A DNA stretch of 64,000 bases from Epithemia pelagica. Lineage: Eukaryota > Protista > Bacillariophyta. Positions 1-22,350 of this stretch are shown here, piece after piece. Position 1 is the first letter of the stretch. Each line of letters opens with the position of its first letter. Location: NCBI GenBank assembly GCA_946965045.2, contig OX337234.1:248001-312000 (forward strand), read 5' to 3'. Under the pieces are notes generated by a model. The model did no database searches. It was not told where the DNA came from and saw only the letters and a program-made list of their open reading frames with translations. The translations under genes were made by a program, and so were the position numbers.

Positions 1-2
1 CA

Positions 3-3137: not shown

Positions 3138-3183
3138 TCTAGAAAGATGATCGTATTGTAATGATACTATGTACGAGTACTTA

Positions 3184-5073
3184 TTAGTTGTACTTATCGA
3201 TGTCATCTAAGATACGGTCGGAATGGGGACGAACCATGGTGATTTGGTGAGCGTCGTCAGCACCTTCCTTGTATAAAGGACCTGCGATTGGACGACAAAC
3301 GTAAAATGGTAGTCTGTTTGGAGGGAGGTAAATTTCCATGTCGATATAATGGGTCCTATCTTCCTCTGTGAGGTGTTCTCTGGGACACAATGTGGTGGTA
3401 TACAATTCGCCCGACACGCGGTGTTGAAGCAAGAAACGAAGACTGGGGTATCCACTGATGATTTGGACAACCTCAATCACAGACTCGTCTTTCATGAACT
3501 GATCACCGACGTAAATGCTCTTGCCCTTCACTGTTGCTTTTGCCCGGGAGTCCAGCGAAACCAATTCCAGACGGTCTTCTCTTCGGGGTTCGACAGTATT
3601 GTCATTGAGCCATTCTTCGTCACGGCTTGAATTGGTTTTGTTCGCTGGGCTCGGACTCATTGCCACGGGGGGGAGCTTGTACGGGGTGGTGTTGTCGTCG
3701 GAAAGGTCAGATGATGCATTCGATTCGCTGCTTCCATTCTTGGGGTCCGCAATAGTTTCTCCAGCCCTTGTAACATAGTAAACTGTCTCGGGGTGTTCTC
3801 CGGAATCCGAACCAGTAAGGATTGCCTGTAGATGACGTGTAGGGGCGTCACGTTTGAGTTGGTCGCTAGTGCCAATGGTATCATAGGTGTACTTTTCAAA
3901 AGCAACGGTAACACGAACCTGGTTGGGAGAAAACATGAAGTCTACTCGCTGTTGTTTCGAGCGACGTTTGAATTCTTGAGGAGACTCTGCTTCTTCCTGG
4001 CCTCGGACAACGGTCAATGTATGCCCGCGTTTGAGAGACATTCCACGGTCTCCGTCAGATAAAGTTGGACGGGATTCGGTTGAGCCATAGATGGCACTAA
4101 TACCAAGAAAGGAACGGAGAAGATGAAGGTCGTCACACGAAATGAAACGGAGGAACCCACTTTCGTACTTGAATTTCAATTTACGGCGGGTCAATTTTTC
4201 GTCCAATACCAAATAAGCCTCTGTATTAGAAATAGAGTGACAAGTGAGAGTCTGTACTGTAGAGTTTGCCAGAACGTGGATGTAGTTAAATACTTCCAAA
4301 GGAATGGCACCGATTGAAATGGATTGGGTGTGACGCTCTTCGAGAGCTCCACTTCGACGATTCATAATCTTCATGATTGCTTTTCGAAGCTGAAACAGGC
4401 CTGTCCAAATGTTCTTATGCAGGCATCGAGGACAGACGATTAGATCGTCGGGGTCTCGCTTTACATAGTCCGTAGGGAAACAACGGACTTCTTCATCTTT
4501 GATAGGAACTAAACGAACCACTCCGCCGATTTTCTTTTGCTTGTATCGAACAACGTAAACATTCCGCATTCCTTCGGCCCAGGAGTTCTTGGGATCTTGC
4601 AAGTCATGGAGGTTGAAGACGAAAGCAGGGTACATGATTTCAGTCTTGTAGGTGATTGGGTGGCTGCCGTCGATAAAGACAGATGCTTTGTAGAGTTCAA
4701 TGCATTGAGAACCGGGGCCGTGTTCGATGGGAGTAAAGTCATGATCGGGGATTTCGGGGTGGCATTCGAGTTTTTTCTTGGGAAATAAGGGGAAAAACAA
4801 GGAAAGGGCAGGTGCTCCTGTTTCATCGTTGCGTTCGATGCGAGACACGGTTGTGGTGAAATGGTCTTGCTTGGGGAGAAGAAGGTGAGCAAAGGTTTCC
4901 AATCTGAAGGAGTCTTCCATGTGCGGCACATAAAGCGGACGGTTGAAATCAGAATCAGAGGTAGTCGGCATCGTGATTGTCTTGTTGTCTTCAAAGGAAA
5001 ATTGTTGTGAAGAAGAGAGTGGGTGGGTTGATTGTTGATCGTCTTTACGTTCTGGTACATTGGTTCCGTTCAT
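3184..5073 (-). CDS. 629-aa protein of unknown function, convergent with the transposase; probable element-encoded partner
   Basis: Long uninterrupted ORF with globular-looking sequence and an S/N/D-rich linker. Its stop lies 46 bp from the transposase stop. No domain recognised. Confidence 0.75.
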   Translation of the reverse strand: MNGTNVPERKDDQQSTHPLSSSQQFSFEDNKTITMPTTSDSDFNRPLYVPHMEDSFRLETFAHLLLPKQDHFTTTVSRIERNDETGAPALSLFFPLFPKKKLECHPEIPDHDFTPIEHGPGSQCIELYKASVFIDGSHPITYKTEIMYPAFVFNLHDLQDPKNSWAEGMRNVYVVRYKQKKIGGVVRLVPIKDEEVRCFPTDYVKRDPDDLIVCPRCLHKNIWTGLFQLRKAIMKIMNRRSGALEERHTQSISIGAIPLEVFNYIHVLANSTVQTLTCHSISNTEAYLVLDEKLTRRKLKFKYESGFLRFISCDDLHLLRSFLGISAIYGSTESRPTLSDGDRGMSLKRGHTLTVVRGQEEAESPQEFKRRSKQQRVDFMFSPNQVRVTVAFEKYTYDTIGTSDQLKRDAPTRHLQAILTGSDSGEHPETVYYVTRAGETIADPKNGSSESNASSDLSDDNTTPYKLPPVAMSPSPANKTNSSRDEEWLNDNTVEPRREDRLELVSLDSRAKATVKGKSIYVGDQFMKDESVIEVVQIISGYPSLRFLLQHRVSGELYTTTLCPREHLTEEDRTHYIDMEIYLPPNRLPFYVCRPIAGPLYKEGADDAHQITMVRPHSDRILDDIDKYN

Positions 5074-5280
5074 GGATCAAGGGGTCCGAGATCGTCTATG
5101 CATTGGAGGTAGGTTGGATGGAGGCAGTACCGGTAAAGAAAAAGTGAGAAGAAGTTCGTACCGTTGATAAAAAAAAGGTTAAATGTTGTACGTGGTTTAA
5201 GTCACAGTTTCGGTGTCTAGAGTTGGTTGTTTAAGAAGAAATTTGCGCGCGGGCACGTAGAAAAGGTGCGCCGGTATGGT

Positions 5281-5329
5281 TGGGGGTACGTTTTGGCACG
5301 TGTAGGTGAGGGAAATTGGTACCGAAGTG
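5281..5329 (-). repeat. Candidate right terminal inverted repeat
   Basis: The minus strand reads CACTTCG-25 nt-GCCAAAACG inward from 5329. A 5'-CAC start is typical of Transib TIRs and RSS heptamers. The partner end is not visible. Confidence 0.3.
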
Positions 5330-5384
5330 CTCCTATTGGAAAAAGAGGATACACTTCAATAAGTTAGAATAACAAATAGAGATC

Positions 5385-8300
5385 ATGAGTTCTGCAGCAC
5401 AATTCACAGCGGCCAAGGCCATGGGGCCACAGTCGCAACGATACGGAAATCAGTACTCTCGTTGGCCAAAGAAGAGTTGGAAGAAGCGTTCAGGTTGGAG
5501 AAAGATGGACCTTTCGGTCATCTTTGAGTCCGACATTGACTGCCCCATCTGCAGGGCCAAGGCAAGAGGAATGGCCATCCCTCATCGCCCTCACCACCCC
5601 AGATGTAGCAAAAACACAACAACAAGGGGCAAGGGAATGAACGATGGAAGAGGAGCAGAGGTAGTGGCCTCAGAAAAGGCCCAGGCTGCCCATGCCAAAG
5701 CAATCCGCAAGCAACTTACCAGTGCAGAGAGATTGTCCGCCTCCAATGTCACACAGGAGGCACTCAACACTTTCATGGAGCATCGTCCAAATTGCTCGTC
5801 GAAAAAAGCAACGACAAGAGACGCTGAAAATGAAAAAACACAATCAACTACGGAGACTACGGCAACGGAAAGTTCTACCGTTGGTGGCGAGGAAGGCGTG
5901 TATGTTCCAACAGCCGAAGATTTCAAGTTTGAGGTAATTATGCGTGTGACAGCAGTACCTACGGAGGTGCATGTCCCACGTGCTGTGCATGCGTTGGCGA
6001 GTTATGTGACCGACACGTGCCTTGGTTCTAAGCGTTGTGTTGAGAATTTGAAACCTTTCTTCACTAATATTACCGTTACTGTACCCCCCATTGCCGACAA
6101 CACGAGTGCTTTGTACGACTCGATTGTGGGACAGGAACTCCTGGTTGTTGATTGGGAGCTGTTTTTCCCCAGTCACCACTTGCGTTGTCCTCGTTGCCGG
6201 GGTAATCTCCAGCGTACGCGATCGAACTTTTCAAAAAACAAGTCCCTTTTCCCCATTTTCGCCATATCTGGTCCCCCAAAGTATGCAATACTTATGGGAT
6301 ACAAGTGTGCCGGGTGCTCGGCTGCCTTCTATGCGAATGATGGAGAATTGCTCGCACGACTGCCTCCCTACATGGCTATGTGTTACCCAGTGAAATCCAA
6401 GTATTCTAGAGGAACATCGCATCTAGCTAAAGATGCTACGAGGATTATGGAAGCATCAATGGTAACCTATGGCAATGGGGATTACATCAGTCGGATGCTA
6501 TATGAAGGAATCAACACCTACTATGAAGACAAGACAATGAGATACTATTCTTATTGTGCTGCTACAGGAAAAGAATCAGAAGACTACGTGCAAAAGGATG
6601 GTGAGTTTCTGGTTCGCTACCCACCTTTAGGCGAGACAATCCGCCAGCTATATGATGATGGAGCTAGCTCCGAATGGCAACCCTGGATGGTGTCGGACAA
6701 TGAGAGAAACACAAGAGAGATTCAAGGGGTTAGATGCCAGCACATGTTTGCTCACGACCACACCCACCAGGTAGTGAAAAATTATCCAAGACGCCTCAAT
6801 GCAGCTGCAATGTGGACCATGGCAACAGAGGCAGGAGAAATTGCTTGTGCAGTGTTAGTGCACGACACATCAGCACTCGAGTTTGCACATGCTGCGGAAC
6901 AAGTGCTGAGACGTACCGGGTTTTGCCCCAAGGCCATGTACTCTGACACATGGCCTTGTGGCAAGGATTTTTGGTTGTTGTTGGTTGATGACTTGGAGGG
7001 CCGTCTTGGCCTTTTCCATTTCATACAGAGGATCACCAAGACGCTCAGACAACGGCACATTGACTTTGGGATAGCCATGAAGGATTTGTTGGATGCAATC
7101 TACGAGTACCATCCTGAAGACTTGGAGAAACTTGTTGGTTCTTTGAAAAATGGAACCATGTCAAGCTCCAAGAAACAATACACAGACGAAGAGATCAGTG
7201 AAATGATGGGAACAAAGACCTTTCGACAGAGGTACTCAAAGAACTTACGGAAGATTATTCGGGGTGGCGATACCATTGTCCTCAAGTTGGAGGAGTGGAA
7301 GTGCAAATACAAGTGCACTTCCACTCCTGGCAAGCCACCAGCACGAGGCCGATTGGATCCACACTCCAATCAACCTCTTTTTACGGCCGAAACACATCAA
7401 GCACTGGAAAACTGTAAAGAGAAGGCAAAGTTCCTTGCTGATCCCTTGCCCGTGGAGAAAATGTATCGTGAGATACCTCCATCACCAAGATCAAGCAACC
7501 AGCTGGTGGAGTACGTACCTTTGAGAGGAGAGAGTAAGCTCGAGAGCTTTCATGACAATTTGACGCATTTTGCCAACTGTGGCATGCGAGAAACTCTCGC
7601 AGATGCTTTGAATTTGGCAGGCACGGCCCAGTATAACAGGGCAGTTTGTCACAAGATGAGAATCATGACGAAGTCTCAAGAAGAACGTTCAGTGGTGCCT
7701 GCAGGATGGGAAATGGTGGTGAGTTTTGGTAACGCATGCAAAACAAACATGATCAATATACTTGCCTCGATGTCTGGAGCTTCTCGTCCTCCCTTTCCAG
7801 AGGTTGAGAAGCTTCCAGAAGATACAGGAGAACGGTTTTTCTCCGAGTACCTGGAAACGAGAAAAGAAATCACGCAACAAGTTCCAAAGCATCCACTCAA
7901 CGATCGATGCCAGTGCCGAAAATGTGCGAGCAACAAGAAGAGGTTGCCGCATGACACGTCCATTCCATTGTTGGGTTTGGCAGAGGAGGAGTCAGAGGTC
8001 GAAGATGAAATCCAACAACAGGACAGCGAGGAGAATCCAGCCAAAATACAACAACCAGAGACACAGCCAGAAACACAACAACAGACACGGCAAGAAACAC
8101 AACAACAGACACAACAACAAGAAACAGCACAAGCACAGGCAATCAGTAGCAATAAGAGAAAGGAAAGAGAGCGAGAAGAAAAAGAGAGCGACGATTTGGA
8201 TGAGAACAACACCAGCAACAAAAAGCAAAAGGTTACAAACAACAGCGAAGCCTTACCAACAACAACGATGGCAGCAACAAATCAATCAGCAGCGACAGTG

Positions 8301-8717
8301 CAGGATCAACAACAACAACACAAAGAGCCTCAAAATGCAGCAAACAGGACACCTGCAATGGCAACAACAGCAAATGGGTTGGTGGTACTGCAATCGACAA
8401 CAACAACAACGACAACAAGACAGAAAAACCAACCTGTCAACCCGTACAAGCAAAATCAGCAACGGCCAACAACACTCCCCGATCAACAGCAATACCCCTT
8501 TGCATTCAACAGCAATCCCCATGGCTGGGGTGGTCTTCAATCCGTCCCGAGATGTATGCCCACCTTTCCTCCCTTCGGACCACCACCTCGTGTCCAGACC
8601 CAGTTCTGTTGCGTCAAGTACATGAAGTACTGCGTAGAACGAGGGAAAGGACGTCCACCCCATGACCGACGCTGCCCCAAACGAGCCTTGAACAAGGCAC
8701 CATCTTCATTCTCTTGA
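5385..8717 (+). CDS. 1110-aa zinc-finger/DDE transposase-like protein, copy 1
   Basis: Cys/His clusters (CPIC..HHPRC; CPRC..YKCAGC; CQCRKC; C-terminal CC..H..C). Candidate D-D-H-E core: AHDHT, YSDTWP, GLFHFIQRI, RGESKLESFH. Q/T/E-rich tail. Confidence 0.65.
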   Translation: MSSAAQFTAAKAMGPQSQRYGNQYSRWPKKSWKKRSGWRKMDLSVIFESDIDCPICRAKARGMAIPHRPHHPRCSKNTTTRGKGMNDGRGAEVVASEKAQAAHAKAIRKQLTSAERLSASNVTQEALNTFMEHRPNCSSKKATTRDAENEKTQSTTETTATESSTVGGEEGVYVPTAEDFKFEVIMRVTAVPTEVHVPRAVHALASYVTDTCLGSKRCVENLKPFFTNITVTVPPIADNTSALYDSIVGQELLVVDWELFFPSHHLRCPRCRGNLQRTRSNFSKNKSLFPIFAISGPPKYAILMGYKCAGCSAAFYANDGELLARLPPYMAMCYPVKSKYSRGTSHLAKDATRIMEASMVTYGNGDYISRMLYEGINTYYEDKTMRYYSYCAATGKESEDYVQKDGEFLVRYPPLGETIRQLYDDGASSEWQPWMVSDNERNTREIQGVRCQHMFAHDHTHQVVKNYPRRLNAAAMWTMATEAGEIACAVLVHDTSALEFAHAAEQVLRRTGFCPKAMYSDTWPCGKDFWLLLVDDLEGRLGLFHFIQRITKTLRQRHIDFGIAMKDLLDAIYEYHPEDLEKLVGSLKNGTMSSSKKQYTDEEISEMMGTKTFRQRYSKNLRKIIRGGDTIVLKLEEWKCKYKCTSTPGKPPARGRLDPHSNQPLFTAETHQALENCKEKAKFLADPLPVEKMYREIPPSPRSSNQLVEYVPLRGESKLESFHDNLTHFANCGMRETLADALNLAGTAQYNRAVCHKMRIMTKSQEERSVVPAGWEMVVSFGNACKTNMINILASMSGASRPPFPEVEKLPEDTGERFFSEYLETRKEITQQVPKHPLNDRCQCRKCASNKKRLPHDTSIPLLGLAEEESEVEDEIQQQDSEENPAKIQQPETQPETQQQTRQETQQQTQQQETAQAQAISSNKRKEREREEKESDDLDENNTSNKKQKVTNNSEALPTTTMAATNQSAATVQDQQQQHKEPQNAANRTPAMATTANGLVVLQSTTTTTTTRQKNQPVNPYKQNQQRPTTLPDQQQYPFAFNSNPHGWGGLQSVPRCMPTFPPFGPPPRVQTQFCCVKYMKYCVERGKGRPPHDRRCPKRALNKAPSSFS

Positions 8718-9109
8718 TTGACCTGAATACCTGCATGACAAACAACAAAAAGAAAAATTCGTAGTGAGTAACATCGTAGCAAAAAGAATTATGACAAGAT
8801 CTTGTGCGAGGTGCAAGCAGTTCCGATTGTGATGCGAAGCACAGACTGGATACGCCTCATCACATGCTACGTAGAACCACGTGAAAGGTCATCGGATGGT
8901 CGGGAGGATTGTACCAGTGTAGAATGTCGTTTCAATAACAAAAAGGTGCTGAAACGACATGAAGGACTTAATCGTTTTGGAGGGGAAGTGCCTTCTCCCC
9001 TCTGAGGGAAGCTTGGAGCTTCCTAGAACATTTCATACGTCAGAGGAAACAAACGTGAGACTGCGAGCAATACGCGGATCGATTTCATGAAGGAATCTGA
9101 CTTACGGAA

Positions 9110-9171
9110 TCTCCTTCTTCTCTCCTTCTCTCTCCCCCTCCTCTCCCCCTCTCCTCTGCCTTCTCCCCCCT
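9110..9171 (+). repeat. 62-nt polypyrimidine (CT) tract near the end of each array unit (also 13215-13276, 17320-17381, 21425-21487)
   Basis: Only one purine in 62 nt. Confidence 0.9.
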
Positions 9172-9400
9172 ATTTTCGCTCGGGGGTGTTAGTTTCAAAA
9201 GGCAGCAATATGATTGGGTTAGAAATGTCGTTTCACAAAAAATCACTTAGGAAACAAATGTCGTTACAAGTGTCTTACCGTGTCCCGGGAACCCATCGAA
9301 TCACGGACAAAAAACATGGAGGGAAGATTCCATCAGCCGATCCGGTCGGTCCTTCACGGTCGCCCATGGCATGGCCAAGTCGACCATTGCGACAAGTCCT

Positions 9401-9440
9401 CTTCTGACCATCTCATGACCCTTTTGAGCATGGTCAGAAG
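9401..9440. repeat. Inverted repeat at array junction 1
   Basis: CTTCTGACCAT-CTCA [TGACCCTTT] TGAG-C-ATGGTCAGAAG: perfect 11-bp arms plus 4 more bp with one bulge. Confidence 0.85.
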
Positions 9441-9489
9441 CCTGGAAAAGAGGATACACTTCAATAAGTTAGAATAACAAATAGAGATC

Positions 9490-12400
9490 ATGAGTTCTGC
9501 AGCACAATTCACAGCGGCCAAGGCCATGGGGCCACAGTCGCAACGATACGGAAATCAGTACTCTTGTTGGCCAAAGAAGAGTTGGAAGAAGCGTTCAGGT
9601 TGGAGAAAGATGGACCTTTCGGTCATCTTTGAGTCCGACATTGACTGCCCCATCTGCAGGGCCAAGGCAAGAGGAATGGCCATCCCTCATCGCCCTCACC
9701 ACCCCAGATGTAGCAAAAACACAACAACAAGGGGCAAGGGAATGAACGATGGAAGAGGAGCAGAGGTAGTGGCCTCAGAAAAGGCCCAGGCTGCCCATGC
9801 CAAAGCAATCCGCAAGCAACTTACCAGTGCAGAGAGATTGTCCGCCTCCAATGTCACACAGGAGGCACTCAACACTTTCATGGAGCATCGTCCAAATTGC
9901 TCGTCGAAAAAAGCAACGACAAGAGACGCTGAAAATGAAAAAACACAATCAACTACGGAGACTACGGCAACGGAAAGTTCTACCGTTGGTGGCGAGGAAG
10001 GCGTGTATGTTCCAACAGCCGAAGATTTCAAGTTTGAGGTAATTATGCGTGTGACAGCAGTACCTACGGAGGTGCATGTCCCACGTGCTGTGCATGCGTT
10101 GGCGAGTTATGTGACCGACACGTGCCTTGGTTCTAAGCGTTGTGTTGAGAATTTGAAACCTTTCTTCACTAATATTACCGTTACTGTACCCCCCATTGCC
10201 GACAACACGAGTGCTTTGTACGACTCGATTGTGGGACAGGAACTCCTGGTTGTTGATTGGGAGCTGTTTTTCCCCAGTCACCACTTGCGTTGTCCTCGTT
10301 GCCGGGGTAATCTCCAGCGTACGCGATCGAACTTTTCAAAAAACAAGTCCCTTTTCCCCATTTTCGCCATATCTGGTCCCCCAAAGTATGCAATACTTAT
10401 GGGATACAAGTGTGCCGGGTGCTCGGCTGCCTTCTATGCGAATGATGGAGAATTGCTCGCACGACTGCCTCCCTACATGGCTATGTGTTACCCAGTGGAA
10501 TCCAAGTATGCTAGAGGAACATCGCATCTAGCTAAAGATGCTACGAGGATTATGGAAGCATCAATGGTAACCTATGGCAATGGGGATTACATCAGTCGGA
10601 TGCTATATGAAGGAATCAACACCTACTATGAAGACAAGACAATGAGATACTATTCTTATTGTGCTGCTACAGGAAAAGAATCAGAAGACTACGTGCAAAA
10701 GGATGGTGAGTTTCTGGTTCGCTACCCACCTTTAGGCGAGACAATCCGCCAGCTATATGATGATGGAGCTAGCTCCGAATGGCAACCCTGGATGGTGCCG
10801 GACAATGAGAGAAACACAAGAGAGATTCAAGGGGTTAGATGCCAGCACATGTTTGCTCACGACCACACCCACCAGGTAGTGAAAAATTATCCAAGACGCC
10901 TCAATGCAGCTGCAATGTGGACCATGGCAACAGAGGCAGGAGAAATTGCTTGTGCAGTGTTAGTGCACGACACATCAGCACTCGAGTTTGCACATGCTGC
11001 GGAACAAGTGCTGAGACGTACCGGGTTTTGCCCCAAGGCCATGTACTCTGACACATGGCCTTGTGGCAAGGATTTTTGGTTGTTGTTGGTTGATGACTTG
11101 GAGGGCCGTCTTGGCCTTTTCCATTTCATACAGAGGATCACCAAGACGCTCAGACAACGGCACATTGACTTTGGGATAGCCATGAAGGATTTGTTGGATG
11201 CAATCTACGAGTACCATCCTGAAGACTTGGAGAAACTTGTTGGTTCTTTGAAAAATGGAACCATGTCAAGCTCCAAGAAACAATACACAGACGAAGAGAT
11301 CAGTGAAATGATGGGAACAAAGACCTTTCGACAGAGGTACTCAAAGAACTTACGGAAGATTATTCGGGGTGGCGATACCATTGTCCTCAAGTTGGAGGAG
11401 TGGAAGTGCAAATACAAGTGCACTTCCACTCCTGGCAAGCCACCAGCACGAGGCCGATTGGATCCACACTCCAATCAACCTCTTTTTACGGCCGAAACAC
11501 ATCAAGCACTGGAAAACTGTAAAGAGAAGGCAAAGTTCCTTGCTGATCCCTTGCCCGTGGAGAAAATGTATCGTGAGATACCTCCATCACCAAGATCAAG
11601 CAACCAGCTGGTGGAGTACGTACCTTTGAGAGGAGAGAGTAAGCTCGAGAGCTTTCATGACAATTTGACGCATTTTGCCAACTGTGGCATGCGAGAAACT
11701 CTCGCAGATGCTTTGAATTTGGCAGGCACGGCCCAGTATAACAGGGCAGTTTGTCACAAGATGAGAATCATGACGAAGTCTCAAGAAGAACGTTCAGTGG
11801 TGCCTGCAGGATGGGAAATGGTGGTGAGTTTTGGTAACGCATGCAAAACAAACATGATCAATATACTTGCCTCGATGTCTGGAGCTTCTCGTCCTCCCTT
11901 TCCAGAGGTTGAGAAGCTTCCAGAAGATACAGGAGAACGGTTTTTCTCCGAGTACCTGGAAACGAGAAAAGAAATCACGCAACAAGTTCCAAAGCATCCA
12001 CTCAACGATCGATGCCAGTGCCGAAAATGTGCGAGCAACAAGAAGAGGTTGCCGCATGACACGTCCATTCCATTGTTGGGTTTGGCAGAGGAGGAGTCAG
12101 AGGTCGAAGATGAAATCCAACAACAGGACAGCGAGGAGAATCCAGCCAAAATACAACAACCAGAGACACAGCCAGAAACACAACAACAGACACGGCAAGA
12201 AACACAACAACAGACACAACAACAAGAAACAGCACAAGCACAGGCAATCAGTAGCAATAAGAGAAAGGAAAGAGAGCGAGAAGAAAAAGAGAGCGACGAT
12301 TTGGATGAGAACAACACCAGCAACAAAAAGCAAAAGGTTACAAACAACAGCGAAGCCTTACCAACAACAACGATGGCAGCAACAAATCAATCAGCAGCGA

Positions 12401-12822
12401 CAGTGCAGGATCAACAACAACAACACAAAGAGCCTCAAAATGCAGCAAACAGGACACCTGCAATGGCAACAACAGCAAATGGGTTGGTGGTACTGCAATC
12501 GACAACAACAACAACGACAACAAGACAGAAAAACCAACCTGTCAACCCGTACAAGCAAAATCAGCAACGGCCAACAACACTCCCCGATCAACAGCAATAC
12601 CCCTTTGCATTCAACAGCAATCCCCATGGCTGGGGTGGTCTTCAATCCGTCCCGAGATGTATGCCCACCTTTCCTCCCTTCGGACCACCACCTCGTGTCC
12701 AGACCCAGTTCTGTTGCGTCAAGTACATGAAGTACTGCGTAGAACGAGGGAAAGGACGTCCACCCCATGACCGACGCTGCCCCAAACGAGCCTTGAACAA
12801 GGCACCATCTTCATTCTCTTGA
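9490..12822 (+). CDS. 1110-aa zinc-finger/DDE transposase-like protein, copy 2
   Basis: Intact, near-identical copy of 5385-8717. Confidence 0.65.
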   Translation: MSSAAQFTAAKAMGPQSQRYGNQYSCWPKKSWKKRSGWRKMDLSVIFESDIDCPICRAKARGMAIPHRPHHPRCSKNTTTRGKGMNDGRGAEVVASEKAQAAHAKAIRKQLTSAERLSASNVTQEALNTFMEHRPNCSSKKATTRDAENEKTQSTTETTATESSTVGGEEGVYVPTAEDFKFEVIMRVTAVPTEVHVPRAVHALASYVTDTCLGSKRCVENLKPFFTNITVTVPPIADNTSALYDSIVGQELLVVDWELFFPSHHLRCPRCRGNLQRTRSNFSKNKSLFPIFAISGPPKYAILMGYKCAGCSAAFYANDGELLARLPPYMAMCYPVESKYARGTSHLAKDATRIMEASMVTYGNGDYISRMLYEGINTYYEDKTMRYYSYCAATGKESEDYVQKDGEFLVRYPPLGETIRQLYDDGASSEWQPWMVPDNERNTREIQGVRCQHMFAHDHTHQVVKNYPRRLNAAAMWTMATEAGEIACAVLVHDTSALEFAHAAEQVLRRTGFCPKAMYSDTWPCGKDFWLLLVDDLEGRLGLFHFIQRITKTLRQRHIDFGIAMKDLLDAIYEYHPEDLEKLVGSLKNGTMSSSKKQYTDEEISEMMGTKTFRQRYSKNLRKIIRGGDTIVLKLEEWKCKYKCTSTPGKPPARGRLDPHSNQPLFTAETHQALENCKEKAKFLADPLPVEKMYREIPPSPRSSNQLVEYVPLRGESKLESFHDNLTHFANCGMRETLADALNLAGTAQYNRAVCHKMRIMTKSQEERSVVPAGWEMVVSFGNACKTNMINILASMSGASRPPFPEVEKLPEDTGERFFSEYLETRKEITQQVPKHPLNDRCQCRKCASNKKRLPHDTSIPLLGLAEEESEVEDEIQQQDSEENPAKIQQPETQPETQQQTRQETQQQTQQQETAQAQAISSNKRKEREREEKESDDLDENNTSNKKQKVTNNSEALPTTTMAATNQSAATVQDQQQQHKEPQNAANRTPAMATTANGLVVLQSTTTTTTTRQKNQPVNPYKQNQQRPTTLPDQQQYPFAFNSNPHGWGGLQSVPRCMPTFPPFGPPPRVQTQFCCVKYMKYCVERGKGRPPHDRRCPKRALNKAPSSFS

Positions 12823-13505
12823 TTGACCTGAATACCTGCATGACAAACAACAAAAAGAAAAATTCGTAGTGAGTAACATCGTAGCAAAAAGAATTATGAC
12901 AAGATCTTGTGCGAGGTGCAAGCAGTTCCGATTGTGATGCGAAGCACAGACTGGATACGCCTCATCACATGCTACGTAGAACCACGTGAAAGGTCATCGG
13001 ATGGTCGGGAGGATTGTACCAGTGTAGAATGTCGTTTCAATAACAAAAAGGTGCTGAAACGACATGAAGGGCTTAATCGTTTTGGAGGGGAAGTGCCTTC
13101 TCCCCTCTGAGGGAAGCTTGGAGCTTCCTAGAACATTTCATACGTCAGAGGAAACAAACGTGAGACTGCGAGCAATACGCGGATCGATTTCATGAAGGAA
13201 TCTGACTTACGGAATCTCCTTCTTCTCTCCTTCTCTCTCCCCCTCCTCTCCCCCTCTCCTCTGCCTTCTCCCCCCTATTTTCGCTCGGGGGTGTTAGTTT
13301 CAAAAGGCAGCAATATGATTGGGTTAGAAATGTCGTTTCACAAAAAATCACTTAGGAAACAAATGTCGTTACAAGTGTCTTACCGTGTCCCGGGAACCCA
13401 TCGAATCACGGACAAAAAACATGAAGGGAAGATTCCATCAGCCGATCCGGTCGGTCCTTCACGGTCGCCCATGGCATGGCCAAGTCGACCATTGCGACAA
13501 GTCCT

Positions 13506-13545
13506 CTTCTGACCATCTCATGACCCTTTTGAGCATGGTCAGAAG
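13506..13545. repeat. Inverted repeat at array junction 2
   Basis: Identical to 9401-9440. Confidence 0.85.
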
Positions 13546-13594
13546 CCTGGAAAAGAGGATACACTTCAATAAGTTAGAATAACAAATAGAGATC

Positions 13595-16500
13595 ATGAGT
13601 TCTGCAGCACAATTCACAGCGGCCAAGGCCATGGGGCCACAGTCGCAACGATACGGAAATCAGTACTCTTGTTGGCCAAAGAAGAGTTGGAAGAAGCGTT
13701 CAGGTTGGAGAAAGATGGACCTTTCGGTCATCTTTGAGTCCGACATTGACTGCCCCATCTGCAGGGCCAAGGCAAGAGGAATGGCCATCCCTCATCGCCC
13801 TCACCACCCCAGATGTAGCAAAAACACAACAACAAGGGGCAAGGGAATGAACGATGGAAGAGGAGCAGAGGTAGTGGCCTCAGAAAAGGCCCAGGCTGAC
13901 CATGCCAAAGCAATCCGCAAGCAACTTACCAGTGCAGAGAGATTGTCCGCCTCCAATGTCACACAGGAGGCACTCAACACTTTCATGGAGCATCGTCCAA
14001 ATTGCTCGTCGAAAAAAGCAACGACAAGAGACGCTGAAAATGAAAAAACACAATCAACTACGGAGACTACGGCAACGGAAAGTTCTACCGTTGGTGGCGA
14101 GGAAGGCGTGTATGTTCCAACAGCCGAAGATTTCAAGTTTGAGGTAATTATGCGTGTGACAGCAGTACCTACGGAGGTGCATGTCCCACGTGCTGTGCAT
14201 GCGTTGGCGAGTTATGTGACCGACACGTGCCTTGGTTCTAAGCGTTGTGTTGAGAATTTGAAACCTTTCTTCACTAATATTACCGTTACTGTACCCCCCA
14301 TTGCCGACAACACGAGTGCTTTGTACGACTCGATTGTGGGACAGGAACTCCTGGTTGTTGATTGGGAGCTGTTTTTCCCCAGTCACCACTTGCGTTGTCC
14401 TCGTTGCCGGGGTAATCTCCAGCGTACGCGATCGAACTTTTCAAAAAACAAGTCCCTTTTCCCCATTTTCGCCATATCTGGTCCCCCAAAGTATGCAATA
14501 CTTATGGGATACAAGTGTGCCGGGTGCTCGGCTGCCTTCTATGCGAATGATGGAGAATTGCTCGCACGACTGCCTCCCTACATGGCTATGTGTTACCCAG
14601 TGGAATCCAAGTATGCTAGAGGAACATCGCATCTAGCTAAAGATGCTACGAGGATTATGGAAGCATCAATGGTAACCTATGGCAATGGGGATTACATCAG
14701 TCGGATGCTATATGAAGGAATCAACACCTACTATGAAGACAAGACAATGAGATACTATTCTTATTGTGCTGCTACAGGAAAAGAATCAGAAGACTACGTG
14801 CAAAAGGATGGTGAGTTTCTGGTTCGCTACCCACCTTTAGGCGAGACAATCCGCCAGCTATATGATGATGGAGCTAGCTCCGAATGGCAACCCTGGATGG
14901 TGCCGGACAATGAGAGAAACACAAGAGAGATTCAAGGGGTTAGATGCCAGCACATGTTTGCTCACGACCACACCCACCAGGTAGTGAAAAATTATCCAAG
15001 ACGCCTCAATGCAGCTGCAATGTGGACCATGGCAACAGAGGCAGGAGAAATTGCTTGTGCAGTGTTAGTGCACGACACATCAGCACTCGAGTTTGCACAT
15101 GCTGCGGAACAAGTGCTGAGACGTACCGGGTTTTGCCCCAAGGCCATGTACTCTGACACATGGCCTTGTGGCAAGGATTTTTGGTTGTTGTTGGTTGATG
15201 ACTTGGAGGGCCGTCTTGGCCTTTTCCATTTCATACAGAGGATCACCAAGACGCTCAGACAACGGCACATTGACTTTGGGATAGCCATGAAGGATTTGTT
15301 GGATGCAATCTACGAGTACCATCCTGAAGACTTGGAGAAACTTGTTGGTTCTTTGAAAAATGGAACCATGTCAAGCTCCAAGAAACAATACACAGACGAA
15401 GAGATCAGTGAAATGATGGGAACAAAGACCTTTCGACAGAGGTACTCAAAGAACTTACGGAAGATTATTCGGGGTGGCGATACCATTGTCCTCAAGTTGG
15501 AGGAGTGGAAGTGCAAATACAAGTGCACTTCCACTCCTGGCAAGCCACCAGCACGAGGCCGATTGGATCCACACTCCAATCAACCTCTTTTTACGGCCGA
15601 AACACATCAAGCACTGGAAAACTGTAAAGAGAAGGCAAAGTTCCTTGCTGATCCCTTGCCCGTGGAGAAAATGTATCGTGAGATACCTCCATCACCAAGA
15701 TCAAGCAACCAGCTGGTGGAGTACGTACCTTTGAGAGGAGAGAGTAAGCTCGAGAGCTTTCATGACAATTTGACGCATTTTGCCAACTGTGGCATGCGAG
15801 AAACTCTCGCAGATGCTTTGAATTTGGCAGGCACGGCCCAGTATAACAGGGCAGTTTGTCACAAGATGAGAATCATGACGAAGTCTCAAGAAGAACGTTC
15901 AGTGGTGCCTGCAGGATGGGAAATGGTGGTGAGTTTTGGTAACGCATGCAAAACAAACATGATCAATATACTTGCCTCGATGTCTGGAGCTTCTCGTCCT
16001 CCCTTTCCAGAGGTTGAGAAGCTTCCAGAAGATACAGGAGAACGGTTTTTCTCCGAGTACCTGGAAACGAGAAAAGAAATCACGCAACAAGTTCCAAAGC
16101 ATCCACTCAACGATCGATGCCAGTGCCGAAAATGTGCGAGCAACAAGAAGAGGTTGCCGCATGACACGTCCATTCCATTGTTGGGTTTGGCAGAGGAGGA
16201 GTCAGAGGTCGAAGATGAAATCCAACAACAGGACAGCGAGGAGAATCCAGCCAAAATACAACAACCAGAGACACAGCCAGAAACACAACAACAGACACGG
16301 CAAGAAACACAACAACAGACACAACAACAAGAAACAGCACAAGCACAGGCAATCAGTAGCAATAAGAGAAAGGAAAGAGAGCGAGAAGAAAAAGAGAGCG
16401 ACGATTTGGATGAGAACAACACCAGCAACAAAAAGCAAAAGGTTACAAACAACAGCGAAGCCTTACCAACAACAACGATGGCAGCAACAAATCAATCAGC

Positions 16501-16927
16501 AGCGACAGTGCAGGATCAACAACAACAACACAAAGAGCCTCAAAATGCAGCAAACAGGACACCTGCAATGGCAACAACAGCAAATGGGTTGGTGGTACTG
16601 CAATCGACAGCAACAACAACGACAACAAGACAGAAAAACCAACCTGTCAACCCGTACAAGCAAAATCAGCAACGGCCAACAACACTCCCCGATCAACAGC
16701 AATACCCCTTTGCATTCAACAGCAATCCCCATGGCTGGGGTGGTCTTCAATCCGTCCCGAGATGTATGCCCACCTTTCCTCCCTTCGGACCACCACCTCG
16801 TGTCCAGACCCAGTTCTGTTGCGTCAAGTACATGAAGTACTGCGTAGAACGAGGGAAAGGACGTCCACCCCATGACCGACGCTGCCCCAAACGAGCCTTG
16901 AACAAGGCACCATCTTCATTCTCTTGA
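13595..16927 (+). CDS. 1110-aa zinc-finger/DDE transposase-like protein, copy 3
   Basis: Intact copy with private changes AQADHAK and QSTATT. Confidence 0.65.
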   Translation: MSSAAQFTAAKAMGPQSQRYGNQYSCWPKKSWKKRSGWRKMDLSVIFESDIDCPICRAKARGMAIPHRPHHPRCSKNTTTRGKGMNDGRGAEVVASEKAQADHAKAIRKQLTSAERLSASNVTQEALNTFMEHRPNCSSKKATTRDAENEKTQSTTETTATESSTVGGEEGVYVPTAEDFKFEVIMRVTAVPTEVHVPRAVHALASYVTDTCLGSKRCVENLKPFFTNITVTVPPIADNTSALYDSIVGQELLVVDWELFFPSHHLRCPRCRGNLQRTRSNFSKNKSLFPIFAISGPPKYAILMGYKCAGCSAAFYANDGELLARLPPYMAMCYPVESKYARGTSHLAKDATRIMEASMVTYGNGDYISRMLYEGINTYYEDKTMRYYSYCAATGKESEDYVQKDGEFLVRYPPLGETIRQLYDDGASSEWQPWMVPDNERNTREIQGVRCQHMFAHDHTHQVVKNYPRRLNAAAMWTMATEAGEIACAVLVHDTSALEFAHAAEQVLRRTGFCPKAMYSDTWPCGKDFWLLLVDDLEGRLGLFHFIQRITKTLRQRHIDFGIAMKDLLDAIYEYHPEDLEKLVGSLKNGTMSSSKKQYTDEEISEMMGTKTFRQRYSKNLRKIIRGGDTIVLKLEEWKCKYKCTSTPGKPPARGRLDPHSNQPLFTAETHQALENCKEKAKFLADPLPVEKMYREIPPSPRSSNQLVEYVPLRGESKLESFHDNLTHFANCGMRETLADALNLAGTAQYNRAVCHKMRIMTKSQEERSVVPAGWEMVVSFGNACKTNMINILASMSGASRPPFPEVEKLPEDTGERFFSEYLETRKEITQQVPKHPLNDRCQCRKCASNKKRLPHDTSIPLLGLAEEESEVEDEIQQQDSEENPAKIQQPETQPETQQQTRQETQQQTQQQETAQAQAISSNKRKEREREEKESDDLDENNTSNKKQKVTNNSEALPTTTMAATNQSAATVQDQQQQHKEPQNAANRTPAMATTANGLVVLQSTATTTTTRQKNQPVNPYKQNQQRPTTLPDQQQYPFAFNSNPHGWGGLQSVPRCMPTFPPFGPPPRVQTQFCCVKYMKYCVERGKGRPPHDRRCPKRALNKAPSSFS

Positions 16928-17610
16928 TTGACCTGAATACCTGCATGACAAACAACAAAAAGAAAAATTCGTAGTGAGTAACATCGTAGCAAAAAGAATT
17001 ATGACAAGATCTTGTGCGAGGTGCAAGCAGTTCCGATTGTGATGCGAAGCACAGACTGGATACGCCTCATCACATGCTACGTAGAACCACGTGAAAGGTC
17101 ATCGGATGGTCGGGAGGATTGTACCAGTGTAGAATGTCGTTTCAATAACAAAAAGGTGCTGAAACGACATGAAGGGCTTAATCGTTTTGGAGGGGAAGTG
17201 CCTTCTCCCCTCTGAGGGAAGCTTGGAGCTTCCTAGAACATTTCATACGTCAGAGGAAACAAACGTGAGACTGCGAGCAATACGCGGATCGATTTCATGA
17301 AGGAATCTGACTTACGGAATCTCCTTCTTCTCTCCTTCTCTCTCCCCCTCCTCTCCCCCTCTCCTCTGCCTTCTCCCCCCTATTTTCGCTCGGGGGTGTT
17401 AGTTTCAAAAGGCAGCAATATGATTGGGTTAGAAATGTCGTTTCACAAAAAATCACTTAGGAAACAAATGTCGTTACAAGTGTCTTACCGTGTCCCGGGA
17501 ACCCATCGAATCACGGACAAAAAACATGGAGGGAAGATTCCATCAGCCGATCCGGTCGGTCCTTCACGGTCGCCCATGGCATGGCCAAGTCGACCATTGC
17601 GACAAGTCCT

Positions 17611-17650
17611 CTTCTGACCATCTCATGACCCTTTTGAGCATGGTCAGAAG
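17611..17650. repeat. Inverted repeat at array junction 3
   Basis: Identical to 9401-9440. Confidence 0.85.
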
Positions 17651-17699
17651 CCTGGAAAAGAGGATACACTTCAATAAGTTAGAATAACAAATAGAGATC

Positions 17700-20600
17700 A
17701 TGAGTTCTGCAGCACAATTCACAGCGGCCAAGGCCATGGGGCCACAGTCGCAACGATACGGAAATCAGTACTCTCGTTGGCCAAAGAAGAGTTGGAAGAA
17801 GCGTTCAGGTTGGAGAAAGATGGACCTTTCGGTCATCTTTGAGTCCGACATTGACTGCCCCATCTGCAGGGCCAAGGCAAGAGGAATGGCCATCCCTCAT
17901 CGCCCTCACCACCCCAGATGTAGCAAAAACACAACAACAAGGGGCAAGGGAATGAACGATGGAAGAGGAGCAGAGGTAGTGGCCTCAGAAAAGGCCCAGG
18001 CTGCCCATGCCAAAGCAATCCGCAAGCAACTTACCAGTGCAGAGAGATTGTCCGCCTCCAATGTCACACAGGAGGCACTCAACACTTTCATGGAGCATCG
18101 TCCAAATTGCTCGTCGAAAAAAGCAACGACAAGAGACGCTGAAAATGAAAAAACACAATCAACTACGGAGACTACGGCAACGGAAAGTTCTACCGTTGGT
18201 GGCGAGGAAGGCGTGTATGTTCCAACAGCCGAAGATTTCAAGTTTGAGGTAATTATGCGTGTGACAGCAGTACCTACGGAGGTGCATGTCCCACGTGCTG
18301 TGCATGCGTTGGCGAGTTATGTGACCGACACGTGCCTTGGTTCTAAGCGTTGTGTTGAGAATTTGAAACCTTTCTTCACTAATATTACCGTTACTGTACC
18401 CCCCATTGCCGACAACACGAGTGCTTTGTACGACTCGATTGTGGGACAGGAACTCCTGGTTGTTGATTGGGAGCTGTTTTTCCCCAGTCACCACTTGCGT
18501 TGTCCTCGTTGCCGGGGTAATCTCCAGCGTACGCGATCGAACTTTTCAAAAAACAAGTCCCTTTTCCCCATTTTCGCCATATCTGGTCCCCCAAAGTATG
18601 CAATACTTATGGGATACAAGTGTGCCGGGTGCTCGGCTGCCTTCTATGCGAATGATGGAGAATTGCTCGCACGACTGCCTCCCTACATGGCTATGTGTTA
18701 CCCAGTGGAATCCAAGTATGCTAGAGGAACATCGCATCTAGCTAAAGATGCTACGAGGATTATGGAAGCATCAATGGTAACCTATGGCAATGGGGATTAC
18801 ATCAGTCGGATGCTATATGAAGGAATCAACACCTACTATGAAGACAAGACAATGAGATACTATTCTTATTGTGCTGCTACAGGAAAAGAATCAGAAGACT
18901 ACGTGCAAAAGGATGGTGAGTTTCTGGCTCGCTACCCACCTTTAGGCGAGACAATCCGCCAGCTATATGATGATGGAGCTAGCTCCGAATGGCAACCCTG
19001 GATGGTGTCGGACAATGAGAGAAACACAAGAGAGATTCAAGGGGTTAGATGCCAGCACATGTTTGCTCACGACCACACCCACCAGGTAGTGAAAAATTAT
19101 CCAAGACGCCTCAATGCAGCTGCAATGTGGACCATGGCAACAGAGGCAGGAGAAATTGCTTGTGCAGTGTTAGTGCACGACACATCAGCACTCGAGTTTG
19201 CACATGCTGCGGAACAAGTGCTGAGACGTACCGGGTTTTGCCCCAAGGCCATGTACTCTGACACATGGCCTTGTGGCAAGGATTTTTGGTTGTTGTTGGT
19301 TGATGACTTGGAGGGCCGTCTTGGCCTTTTCCATTTCATACAGAGGATCACCAAGACGCTCAGACAACGGCACATTGACTTTGGGATAGCCATGAAGGAT
19401 TTGTTGGATGCAATCTACGAGTACCATCCTGAAGACTTGGAGAAACTTGTTGGTTCTTTGAAAAATGGAACCATGTCAAGCTCCAAGAAACAATACACAG
19501 ACGAAGAGATCAGTGAAATGATGGGAACAAAGACCTTTCGACAGAGGTACTCAAAGAACTTACGGAAGATTATTCGGGGTGGCGATACCATTGTCCTCAA
19601 GTTGGAGGAGTGGAAGTGCAAATACAAGTGCACTTCCACTCCTGGCAAGCCACCAGCACGAGGCCGATTGGATCCACACTCCAATCAACCTCTTTTTACG
19701 GCCGAAACACATCAAGCACTGGAAAACTGTAAAGAGAAGGCAAAGTTCCTTGCTGATCCCTTGCCCGTGGAGAAAATGTATCGTGAGATACCTCCATCAC
19801 CAAGATCAAGCAACCAGCTGGTGGAGTACGTACCTTTGAGAGGAGAGAGTAAGCTCGAGAGCTTTCATGACAATTTGACGCATTTTGCCAACTGTGGCAT
19901 GCGAGAAACTCTCGCAGATGCTTTGAATTTGGCAGGCACGGCCCAGTATAACAGGGCAATTCGTCACAAGATGAGAATCATGACGAAGTCTCAAGAAGAA
20001 CGTTCAGTGGTGCCTGCAGGATGGGAAATGGTGGTGAGTTTTGGTAACGCATGCAAAACAAACATGATCAATATACTTGCCTCGATGTCTGGAGCTTCTC
20101 GTCCTCCCTTTCCAGAGGTTGAGAAGCTTCCAGAAGATACGGGAGAACGGTTTTTCTCCGAGTACCTGGAAACGAGAAAAGAAATCACGCAACAAGTTCC
20201 AAAGCATCCACTCAACGATCGATGCCAGTGCCGAAAATGTGCGAGCAACAAGAAGAGGTTGCCGCATGACACGTCCATTCCATTGTTGGGTTTGGCAGAG
20301 GAGGAGTCAGAGGTCGAAGATGAAATCCAACAACAGGACAGCGAGGAGAATCCAGCCAAAATACAACAACCACAGACACAGCCAGAAACACAACAACAGA
20401 CACGGCAAGAAACACAACAACAGACACAACAACAAGAAACAGCACAAGCACAGGCAATCAGTAGCAATAAGAGAAAGGAAAGAGAGCGAGAAGAAAAAGA
20501 GAGCGACGATTTGGATGAGAACAACACCAGCAACAAAAAGCAAAAGGTTACAAACAACAGCGAAGCCTTACCAACAACAACGATGGCAGCAACAAATCAA

Positions 20601-21032
20601 TCAGCAGCGACAGTGCAGGATCAACAACAACAACACAAAGAGCCTCAAAATGCAGCAAACAGGACACCTGCAATGGCAACAACAGCAAATGGGTTGGTGG
20701 TACTGCAATCGACAACAACAACAACGACAACAAGACAGAAAAACCAACCTGTCAACCCGTACAAGCAAAATCAGCAACGGCCAACAACACTCCCCGATCA
20801 ACAGCAATACCCCTTTGCATTCAACAGCAATCCCCATGGCTGGGGTGGTCTTCAATCCGTCCCGAGATGTATGCCCACCTTTCCTCCCTTCGGACCACCA
20901 CCTCGTGTCCAGACCCAGTTCTGTTGCGTCAAGTACATGAAGTACTGCGTAGAACGAGGGAAAGGACGTCCACCCCATGACCGACGCTGCCCCAAACGAG
21001 CCTTGAACAAGGCACCATCTTCATTCTCTTGA
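17700..21032 (+). CDS. 1110-aa zinc-finger/DDE transposase-like protein, copy 4
   Basis: Intact copy with private changes EFLARY, RAIRHK and QPQTQ. Confidence 0.65.
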   Translation: MSSAAQFTAAKAMGPQSQRYGNQYSRWPKKSWKKRSGWRKMDLSVIFESDIDCPICRAKARGMAIPHRPHHPRCSKNTTTRGKGMNDGRGAEVVASEKAQAAHAKAIRKQLTSAERLSASNVTQEALNTFMEHRPNCSSKKATTRDAENEKTQSTTETTATESSTVGGEEGVYVPTAEDFKFEVIMRVTAVPTEVHVPRAVHALASYVTDTCLGSKRCVENLKPFFTNITVTVPPIADNTSALYDSIVGQELLVVDWELFFPSHHLRCPRCRGNLQRTRSNFSKNKSLFPIFAISGPPKYAILMGYKCAGCSAAFYANDGELLARLPPYMAMCYPVESKYARGTSHLAKDATRIMEASMVTYGNGDYISRMLYEGINTYYEDKTMRYYSYCAATGKESEDYVQKDGEFLARYPPLGETIRQLYDDGASSEWQPWMVSDNERNTREIQGVRCQHMFAHDHTHQVVKNYPRRLNAAAMWTMATEAGEIACAVLVHDTSALEFAHAAEQVLRRTGFCPKAMYSDTWPCGKDFWLLLVDDLEGRLGLFHFIQRITKTLRQRHIDFGIAMKDLLDAIYEYHPEDLEKLVGSLKNGTMSSSKKQYTDEEISEMMGTKTFRQRYSKNLRKIIRGGDTIVLKLEEWKCKYKCTSTPGKPPARGRLDPHSNQPLFTAETHQALENCKEKAKFLADPLPVEKMYREIPPSPRSSNQLVEYVPLRGESKLESFHDNLTHFANCGMRETLADALNLAGTAQYNRAIRHKMRIMTKSQEERSVVPAGWEMVVSFGNACKTNMINILASMSGASRPPFPEVEKLPEDTGERFFSEYLETRKEITQQVPKHPLNDRCQCRKCASNKKRLPHDTSIPLLGLAEEESEVEDEIQQQDSEENPAKIQQPQTQPETQQQTRQETQQQTQQQETAQAQAISSNKRKEREREEKESDDLDENNTSNKKQKVTNNSEALPTTTMAATNQSAATVQDQQQQHKEPQNAANRTPAMATTANGLVVLQSTTTTTTTRQKNQPVNPYKQNQQRPTTLPDQQQYPFAFNSNPHGWGGLQSVPRCMPTFPPFGPPPRVQTQFCCVKYMKYCVERGKGRPPHDRRCPKRALNKAPSSFS

Positions 21033-22350
21033 TTGACCTGAATACCTGCATGACAAACAACAAAAAGAAAAATTCGTAGTGAGTAACATCGTAGCAAAAA
21101 GAATTATGACAAGATCTTGTGCGAGGTGCAAGCAGTTCCGATTGTGATGCGAAGCACAGACTGGATACGCCTCATCACATGCTACGTAGAACCACGTGAA
21201 AGGTCATCGGATGGTCGGGAGGATTGTACCAGTGTAGAATGTCGTTTCAATAACAAAAAGGTGCTGAAACGACATGAAGGGCTTAATCGTTTTGGAGGGG
21301 AAGTGCCTTCTCCCCTCTGAAAGAAGCTTGGAGCTTCCTAGAACATTTCATACGTCAGAGGAAACAAACGTGAGACTGCGAGCAATACGCGGATCGATTT
21401 CATGAAGGAATCTGACTTACGGAATCTCCTTCTTCTCTCCTTCTCTCTCCCCCTCCTCTCCCCCTCTCCTCTGCCTTCTCCCCCCCTATTTTCGGCTCGG
21501 GCTGTCGGGAACGGGACCTAACATTACTCCCAAGTTTTTGAAATGTTAGTCGCATTGGAGTCACCTTCGTCTTATGTATTGAATGGACCACAGAAGATAA
21601 GAAGACCATCTTTTCCCCCACTCTGGAGAGACTACAGCCTCAAGATCTCGTCCTGATACGGGACTCACTATCCGTGACACGTCTCATAAAGGCGACCAAT
21701 AATGTCGCACCGGCACCCGGCACCTCTTGTTTATAAGAGAGAGTCCGGCGAGATGAAATTTTTCTCAGAACGATGCCATCGCCACATTTTTCGGAGACTC
21801 TTCACCAAAAACGGAGCAGTTGTGCAAAGGGCAAAGCACATGGTACCAAAACGGAGTGATGGCTGAACGGAGCGAAACCATCATAATTTGTATTGGCCTA
21901 TACGCAATGGCCGGGACGCAGAACTTTGTCGTCAAAAGGGTCCACATTATGTGGGCAAATACTTGTTGACAACGAACAGCGGGAAAACGACGCGGGACAA
22001 CAGACATTCTGGCCGCAACCACCGAAAAACTCCCACCATAGCAGAGTCCGCAAAAACCTTTTATGCGACACAGTGAGAAGCAGCAACCACCACGACGACC
22101 TCACCAAAAATTTATTGCGGCATTGCAGCAGTGAGAGGGTGAAAGAGCACGACAATTTTGAGCCGGGGGACTCTGTAATCATGAGCACTGGGAATGGAAA
22201 ACATATGAAAGAATGATATGCAACCAGCGCAAGACATGTTGCAAGAGACACAATTTCATAGTCATCCGAGATTGCAAGGCCACAAAACAAGGTTGATCAA
22301 TCGTTTTGGATCTCCGGAAAACCGAAAACAAAAGCAAGATATCATCAATC

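Follow-up and report, generated by a model that had tools for sequence, protein, structure and literature searches.

Head-to-tail stacking of F1, a DNA transposon with a predicted IS256/Mutator-type transposase, in the diatom Epithemia pelagica

How does a transposable element come to lie in an uninterrupted head-to-tail row, and what is the sequence that seems to separate its copies? The question is raised by a 64,000-nucleotide (nt) stretch of the Epithemia pelagica genome, C7:248001-312000 (contig OX337234.1, assembly GCA_946965045.2), which is referred to here as the window; coordinates without a prefix are window coordinates. A first-pass annotation of this DNA described a transposase-like gene (A) of about 3.85 kb in four intact head-to-tail copies, with a spacer (s) of about 260 bp that was thought to occur only between copies and to need a source of its own. 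The region in fact contains four complete head-to-tail copies of a recently active DNA transposon of 4100 bp, for which we coined the name F1; the copies in the window are designated W1 to W4. The spacer belongs to the element itself, and the most probable origin of the row is repeated insertion of new copies next to a resident one.

The repeat organization was readily confirmed. The units are direct repeats, each beginning exactly 4105 bp after the previous one, so that the interval from 5341 to about 21500 holds 3.93 units, and the sizes given for A and s were correct. Four open reading frames (ORFs) of 1110 amino acids (aa) each (5385-8717, 9490-12822, 13595-16927 and 17700-21032) contain zero stops or frameshifts. 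About 20 positions vary among the four units, which is enough to distinguish the copies.

The proposed search for s and for solo copies elsewhere gave a clear result. At least 22 further F1 copies, 97–99% identical, are present in the assembly (60.5 Mb in 23 contigs). Because s (unit positions 3842-4105) directly precedes A (unit positions 1-3837) in all of these dispersed copies, we conclude that s is the first 263 bp of F1. A fourth s lies about 1.45 kb ahead of the window start (C7:246548-246814, 267 bp, 99% identical) with GCTCG on its left, and is kept apart from the first A by a 6524-bp insertion. Thus, s is not confined to the intervals between copies, and the statement that it matches neither outer flank holds for the immediately adjacent DNA and fails further out, beyond the nested insertion.

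Realignment of the dispersed copies gave a 5′ tip of GGGG(G)TGTTAG and a 3′ end of TATTTTC. A short subterminal AAGGCAG motif (7–8 nt) is found in inverted orientation about 15 nt inside each F1 tip. No longer terminal inverted repeat is present in F1, as the tips GGGGTGTTAG... and ...TATTTTC differ. The real boundary between units of the array is therefore 9177/9183 instead of 5341 or 9445, and neighboring elements are 5 nt apart. No separate source for s is needed, since the unit had been delimited wrongly and the true junction consists of 5 nt of flanking DNA, GCTCG. Position 5341 was rejected as an element end, as the dispersed copies continue uninterrupted across that point. A palindrome at 9401-9440, and at the equivalent positions, lies within the F1 5′ leader, some 50 nt ahead of the start codon. 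As it is found in every solo copy, we rejected a reading of the inverted repeat at 9401-9445 as the meeting point of two transposon ends. In one F1 copy (L136, C1:4065364-4065423) 7 nt of the 5′ tip are tandemly duplicated (GGGGTGTTAGGTGTTAG), and the target duplication, CTCAAA, is perfect.

With E denoting a whole element, the full layout reads GCTCG-[s / nested transposon / A]-GCTCG-E-GCTCG-E-GCTCG-E-(G)GCTCG. The GCTCG target duplication is found at all three junctions and at both array flanks (on the left, L021, just before position 6553). The features are as follows.

1-5338, no strand assigned: right-hand 5.3 kb of the nested 6524-bp two-gene transposon that splits copy 1; the whole transposon is C7:246815-253338.
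5339-9177, plus strand: copy 1 (W1) of F1 minus its first 263 bp; the absent bases are at C7:246553-246814, upstream of the window.
5385-8717, plus strand: transposase ORF of copy 1, 1110 aa, of the DDE type, with candidate catalytic residues D458, D521 and E720.
9178-9182, plus strand: junction 5-mer GCTCG between copies 1 and 2, equal to the left-flank 5-mer of the array and matching the right flank.
9183-13282, plus strand: copy 2 (W2), complete, 4100 bp, with 5′ tip GGGGTGTTAG and 3′ tip TATTTTC; ORF 9490-12822.
9183-9445, plus strand: s, the 5′ leader/promoter region of F1, with the family-wide motif AAGGCAG..TGATTGG.
9401-9440, no strand assigned: perfect 11-bp palindrome with an 18-nt loop within the 5′ leader; not an element end.
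13283-13287, plus strand: junction 5-mer GCTCG between copies 2 and 3.
13288-17387, plus strand: copy 3 (W3), complete; ORF 13595-16927.
17388-17392, plus strand: junction 5-mer GCTCG between copies 3 and 4.
17393-21493, plus strand: copy 4 (W4), complete and nearest to the ancestral state; ORF 17700-21032.
21494-21499, plus strand: right-flank target duplication (G)GCTCG, followed by GG, with one extra G.

Copy 1 seems to be truncated solely owing to the later landing of an unrelated transposon. The ends of the 6524-bp insertion form an imperfect 15-bp inverted repeat (left, CAATAGCAGCACTTC; right, the reverse complement of GAAGTGCTCCTATTG), two other genomic copies of this element stop at exactly the same bases, and the uninterrupted version of the insertion site is present in window copies 2–4. 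This stretch is an independent and discrete mobile unit, unrelated to F1 and nested in copy 1. Its entry point is 4 nt downstream of the site equivalent to the palindrome. As W1 alone carries the nested transposon, it arrived after the array had formed. Its insertion into copy 1 coincides with one additional A, and no obvious target duplication is seen at the three copies of the 6.5-kb element, whose flanks are cctg/gaaa, tgtt/tgca and cctt/tttt.

The sequence differences among W1–W4 bear on how the array grew. The window copies are 3–12 nt apart from each other (0.07–0.3% divergence) and at least 16 nt from every other copy. They form one clade with a support of 99/97 and the topology (W4,(W1,(W2,W3))). 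Because the window copies constitute a single clade and are mutually closest, the array probably grew locally from one founder, either stepwise or with later conversion between copies. Of the changes that distinguish the four ORFs, 10 are nonsynonymous and 1 is synonymous, and three of them affect residues conserved in the family: R755C (W1–W3), S437P (W2 and W3) and A341S (W1). Given this excess and the altered conserved residues, the intact ORFs of the window would reflect youth rather than selection. A full-length ORF is retained in 16 of the 24 F1 copies examined; the F1 family has therefore been active recently.

Additional F1 loci provide further glimpses of this activity. Four copies at separate loci (L007, C7:2971345; L009, C2:5003155; L010, C4:801881; L013, C10:268302) are essentially identical, and their zero-length branches point to what may have been a very recent transposition burst. 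Two other copies, L002 (C10:1299763-1303870) and L003 (C10:1320114-1324221), are 20 kb apart and identical both in sequence and in their flanks. These represent a segmental duplication rather than separate insertions, and both carry a premature stop at codon 283.

The nature of the 1110-aa protein was not apparent from domain searches. Pfam returned nothing significant, only a sub-threshold TraG-D_C match, and neither the Mutator-like element (MULE) domain PF10551 nor Transposase_mut (PF00872) was matched at E values up to 0.01. Relatives of the protein match DUF6729 only, and below its cut-off; a profile search of solved structures with the transposase gave no match. Homologues at 40–58% identity are abundant in diatoms (e.g. 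Seminavis robusta) and in microbial-mat metagenomes. In an alignment of 59 homologues D521 and E720 are invariant, D458 is present in at least 90%, and there are several Cys/His clusters.

An AlphaFold model of residues 230–860, with a predicted local distance difference test (pLDDT) score of 93.8, contains an RNase H-like core and an all-helical insertion domain. In this model D458 is located on strand 1, D521 follows strand 4, and E720 is on the helix that follows the insertion domain. Two independent methods gave the same top structural match, ISCth4, a member of the IS256 family: Foldseek (E value 6.7e-5) and VIA (Z 12.1, with 344 aligned residues over nearly the whole chain). The next VIA matches had Z values of at most 9.4 and covered the catalytic core only. 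From these data we conclude that the protein is, by its predicted fold, a DDE transposase of the IS256/Mutator type, which gives substance to the earlier description of the gene as transposase-like. On the same model the enzymes of Helitrons and Cryptons, two other kinds of eukaryotic element for which head-to-tail stacking is known, are excluded, as the sole ORF of F1 is predicted to fold as a DDE RNase H-like protein, with no HUH Rep/helicase or tyrosine recombinase. The transposase falls outside the Pfam MULE families, and F1 is not a canonical MULE because it has neither long inverted repeats nor a 9-bp target duplication. A literature search for DUF6729 retrieved no paper mentioning it, and we could not find a published description of a transposon family with DUF6729 and an IS256/Mutator fold.

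Is the window array an isolated event? The genome was searched with an exact pattern consisting of the 3′ tip, a gap of 3–10 nt and the 5′ tip. Eight head-to-tail junctions were found at four loci, three of them in the window array. The sole further same-element dimer found is an F1 pair on C8 (1.13 Mb) with the arrangement GAGTA-E-GAGTA-E-GGAAA, in which the copies are 1 nt apart in sequence. The other two loci combine F1 with, or consist of, two sister families with similar tips, F2 (ORF of 1244 aa) and F3 (ORF of 1132 aa). One, at C3:1551619-1564806 (L034–L036), reads GTTGTA-F2-GTTGTA-F2-GTTGTA-F3, and the other, at C7:2971081-2983939 (L025 and L037), reads ATTCGA-F1-ATTCA-F2-GTGGAA-F3. The DNA identity between F2 and F1 is about 66%, and because it is this low the latter array cannot have been built by homologous exchange. 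F2 is followed by F3 at both mixed arrays, yet the spacers differ (GTTGTA versus GTGGAA).

The same arrangement was observed in other species. Among 80 metagenome loci from microbial mats that encode relatives, the element ends are conserved: at the 5′ end about 14 nt separate GGG(G) from AAGGCAG..TGATTGG, and the 3′ end has GCCT..CCCCCC with 8 nt after it. Eighteen of 42 distinct 3′ ends (43%) reach the 5′ tip of another element via a spacer of 5–7 nt. At L092 (TGAGAA-Ea-TGAGAA-Eb) the duplication is a perfect 6 bp and Ea and Eb are from different subfamilies, and at L072/L074 a same-element pair has a spacer equal to its own left flank. In every same-element dimer or array observed (the window array, C8, C3, L038 and L072/L074), the spacer is identical to the left flank, including at loci with a different right flank. 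We conclude that stacking is no accident and that the head-to-tail habit is family-wide, extending across subfamilies and species.

Solo insertions provide information on target choice. A GGG 5–8 nt past the 3′ tip is present in 8 of 24 non-junction flanks, compared with 3.6% of random positions (p ~1e-6); judged by eye, GGG is found at this distance from the 3′ tip at 8 of the 21 F1 loci in the genome. An empty paralogous site showed that the downstream GGG belongs to the target DNA. Two comparisons with empty sites (L041–L043 and L124–L126) were informative, those of L005 (C17:160270-164383) and L014 (C6:2275602-2279704). The comparison for L010 was uninformative, as the insertion is in a poly-A tail, and the flanks of L006 and L013 are single-copy.

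The explanation that we regard as probable is that new copies inserted just upstream of the GGGG tip of a resident element, possibly followed by unequal exchange. A founder F1 would have inserted at the locus, making a target duplication of 5–6 bp. Further copies, made from the resident element, would then have inserted into the few bases directly upstream of the resident GGGG tip, and every such insertion would regenerate an identical 5-mer. The family appears to prefer N5–7 followed by GGG and, given the GGGG at the start of every element, each newly inserted copy and its left duplication would re-create the preferred site at its own 5′ border, thereby providing a fresh landing pad. Insertion upstream of a resident tip explains the identical spacers, the left-flank spacers at C8 and C3 despite a differing right flank, and the mixed-family arrays. 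Retention of the target duplication at a junction is the mark of double insertion, as in bacterial insertion sequence (IS) dimers and in the P and hobo elements of Drosophila, and unequal exchange can later enlarge a dimer that arose in this way (PMC5932611); some of the four copies may likewise have been supplied by unequal exchange between the 4.1-kb repeats. Serial tandem transposition, one of the two routes that the first-pass annotation had suggested, is thus favored, whereas the accompanying idea that both outer ends were later lost is not, as both are present.

Several observations weigh against this explanation. The near-identity of neighbors fits tandem duplication of a resident copy equally well as self-insertion, and the tree is compatible with insertion, unequal exchange and gene conversion alike. 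A clean target duplication of 5–6 bp is present at only about 8 of 22 F1 loci and absent at the others; of the 24 complete environmental relatives, only 4 have one. The 6-mers to the left and right of F2 are not the same in the mixed C7 array, and the two spacers of F1 differ by one indel. The empty-site comparisons of L005 and L014 showed an intact left flank, a 3′ tip followed by about 6 foreign nt, and the loss of 1–2 target nt. As foreign nt are present at these sites and duplications are often absent, ordinary staggered integration is not the whole story. The foreign nt (agccca and agcagg) each partly resemble bases located a few nt before the insertion point, and templated repair synthesis is a possible source of them. 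What entered at these two sites appears to have been the element with additional DNA of about the length of a spacer. A donor search in which the right spacers were compared with 23 left flanks gave no exact match besides the copies' own target duplications; a single cross-family match of 6/6 between spacer and flank (GTGGAA) is within chance.

The foreign 6-mers are what a different mechanism might leave behind. In an IS256-style reaction the 3′ end would be nicked and joined 5–7 nt outside the 5′ tip of the same or a sister element, yielding a figure-eight, a circle or a tandem dimer in which the spacer is the left flank of the donor. The array would then have grown by replication across the junction, or by a circle recombining back into a resident copy. 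Extrachromosomal Mu circles occur in maize. This origin of the array is doubtful but deserves serious attention, because the nearest structural relative of the transposase, ISCth4, is a copy-out/paste-in enzyme, the F1 ends are asymmetric rather than inverted repeats, the spacer is the left flank in every same-element dimer seen even when the right flank differs (C8, C3, L038 and L072/L074), and at the two empty sites the element entered with about 6 foreign nt, as though a junction spacer had been kept. ISCth4 and IS256 form junctions with flank-derived spacers of 6–8 bp as well as tandem dimers (PMC7780238, PMC3299598), and IS30 has been described in similar terms (PMC9333248). It is conceivable, at a comparably modest level of probability, that the head-to-tail junctions and the insertions with about 6 foreign nt and no target duplication are genomic fossils of a copy-out/paste-in-like pathway in a eukaryote. 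However, no circle or figure-eight was observed, with none of the 80 metagenome loci on a circular-looking contig, no left flank examined matches the foreign 6-mers, and a circle recombining with a resident copy cannot yield arrays of elements that are only 66% identical. Moreover, structural kinship does not fix the pathway, as the eukaryotic MULE Muta1 is a cut-and-paste element (PMC5499845).

It is unlikely that the host duplicated a single insertion by slippage or microhomology joining between the short GCTCGGG repeats (7 bp shared), with unequal sister-chromatid exchange then raising the number to four. Both flanks and all junctions of the window array share GCTCG(GG), exactly as this would predict, and expansion of dimers by unequal exchange is well documented (PMC5932611), but neither the C8 dimer, with its right flank of GGAAA and junction of GAGTA, nor the mixed-family arrays are explained, nor is the fact that, in other species, 43% of 3′ ends adjoin another element with both tips exact. 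The other route put forward in the first-pass annotation, in which a concatemer produced as a rolling circle from a 4.1-kb circle integrates in one step, fits poorly and is very improbable. Tandem transposons are known to form by three published routes, one of which is the insertion of a concatemer (PMC5932611), and this would account for regular units and identical junctions; with the nested insertion removed, however, the number of copies is an integer, each end of the array has a true tip and the target duplication, the junction bases are those of the flank, and the derived variants are nested rather than arranged in a star pattern. Even less credible is an assembly artefact, with one or two real copies multiplied during assembly. 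Assembly of 4-kb tandem repeats is prone to error, but the four variant patterns are distinct and phylogenetically nested, the nested transposon is in one copy only, the 60.5 Mb are contained in as few as 23 contigs, and three other loci, as well as metagenomes that were assembled independently, contain similar arrays. Insertion upstream of a resident tip is therefore the explanation that we retain as probable.

The apparent mystery of the spacer and the lost ends thus dissolves: the array consists of whole elements, one of which carries a nested insertion. The lasting interest lies in the family, which is active in diatoms and has a predicted IS256/Mutator fold, no inverted repeats, a habit of head-to-tail stacking and mostly no target duplication on insertion. 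It offers a natural system for studying how tandem arrays, the starting point of satellite DNA, are seeded by transposons, and for asking whether bacterial copy-out/paste-in has a eukaryotic counterpart; if true, the IS256-style mechanism would represent a route so far documented only in bacterial insertion sequences. Such elements will be mis-delimited, as they were in the first-pass annotation, by pipelines that rely on inverted repeats and target duplications. Elsewhere in the window, the composition profile contains an A-rich, GC-richer block at 40–44 kb.

Three known systems invite comparison. The tandem arrays of the Drosophila P, hobo and R1 elements (McGurk and Barbash 2018, PMC5932611) resemble the window array in consisting of complete head-to-tail elements from one founder, with the target duplication in the junctions and flanks. 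In contrast to those arrays, the habit described here is family-wide across subfamilies and species, the target is apparently re-created by the GGGG tip, and most solo insertions are without a target duplication. Bacterial insertion sequences that use copy-out/paste-in (IS256/ISCth4, IS30 and IS3/IS911; PMC7780238, PMC9333248, PMC3299598) share with F1 the predicted ISCth4 fold, a spacer of 5–7 nt equal to the flank of the 5′ end, and tandem dimers. F1 differs in residing in a eukaryote, in encoding a protein of 1110 aa with extra zinc-binding N- and C-terminal regions, in having no terminal inverted repeats, and in a target duplication of 5–6 bp rather than 8–9 bp.

The F1 transposase also has a distant, feature-level similarity to the Mutator families. 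Like MULEs such as Muta1 (PMC5499845) and the Phaeodactylum MULE (bioRxiv 10.1101/2023.01.02.522487), it is predicted to have a DDE core with an all-helical insertion domain, and a cysteine-rich region of DNA-binding type is located upstream of the core. Unlike them, F1 is without a Pfam MULE or Transposase_mut match and without long inverted repeats, and its target duplication is 5–6 bp or absent, compared with 8–11 bp for MULEs. The Phaeodactylum MULE is a distinct, canonical family with inverted repeats of about 200 bp and a target duplication of 9 bp (bioRxiv 10.1101/2023.01.02.522487).

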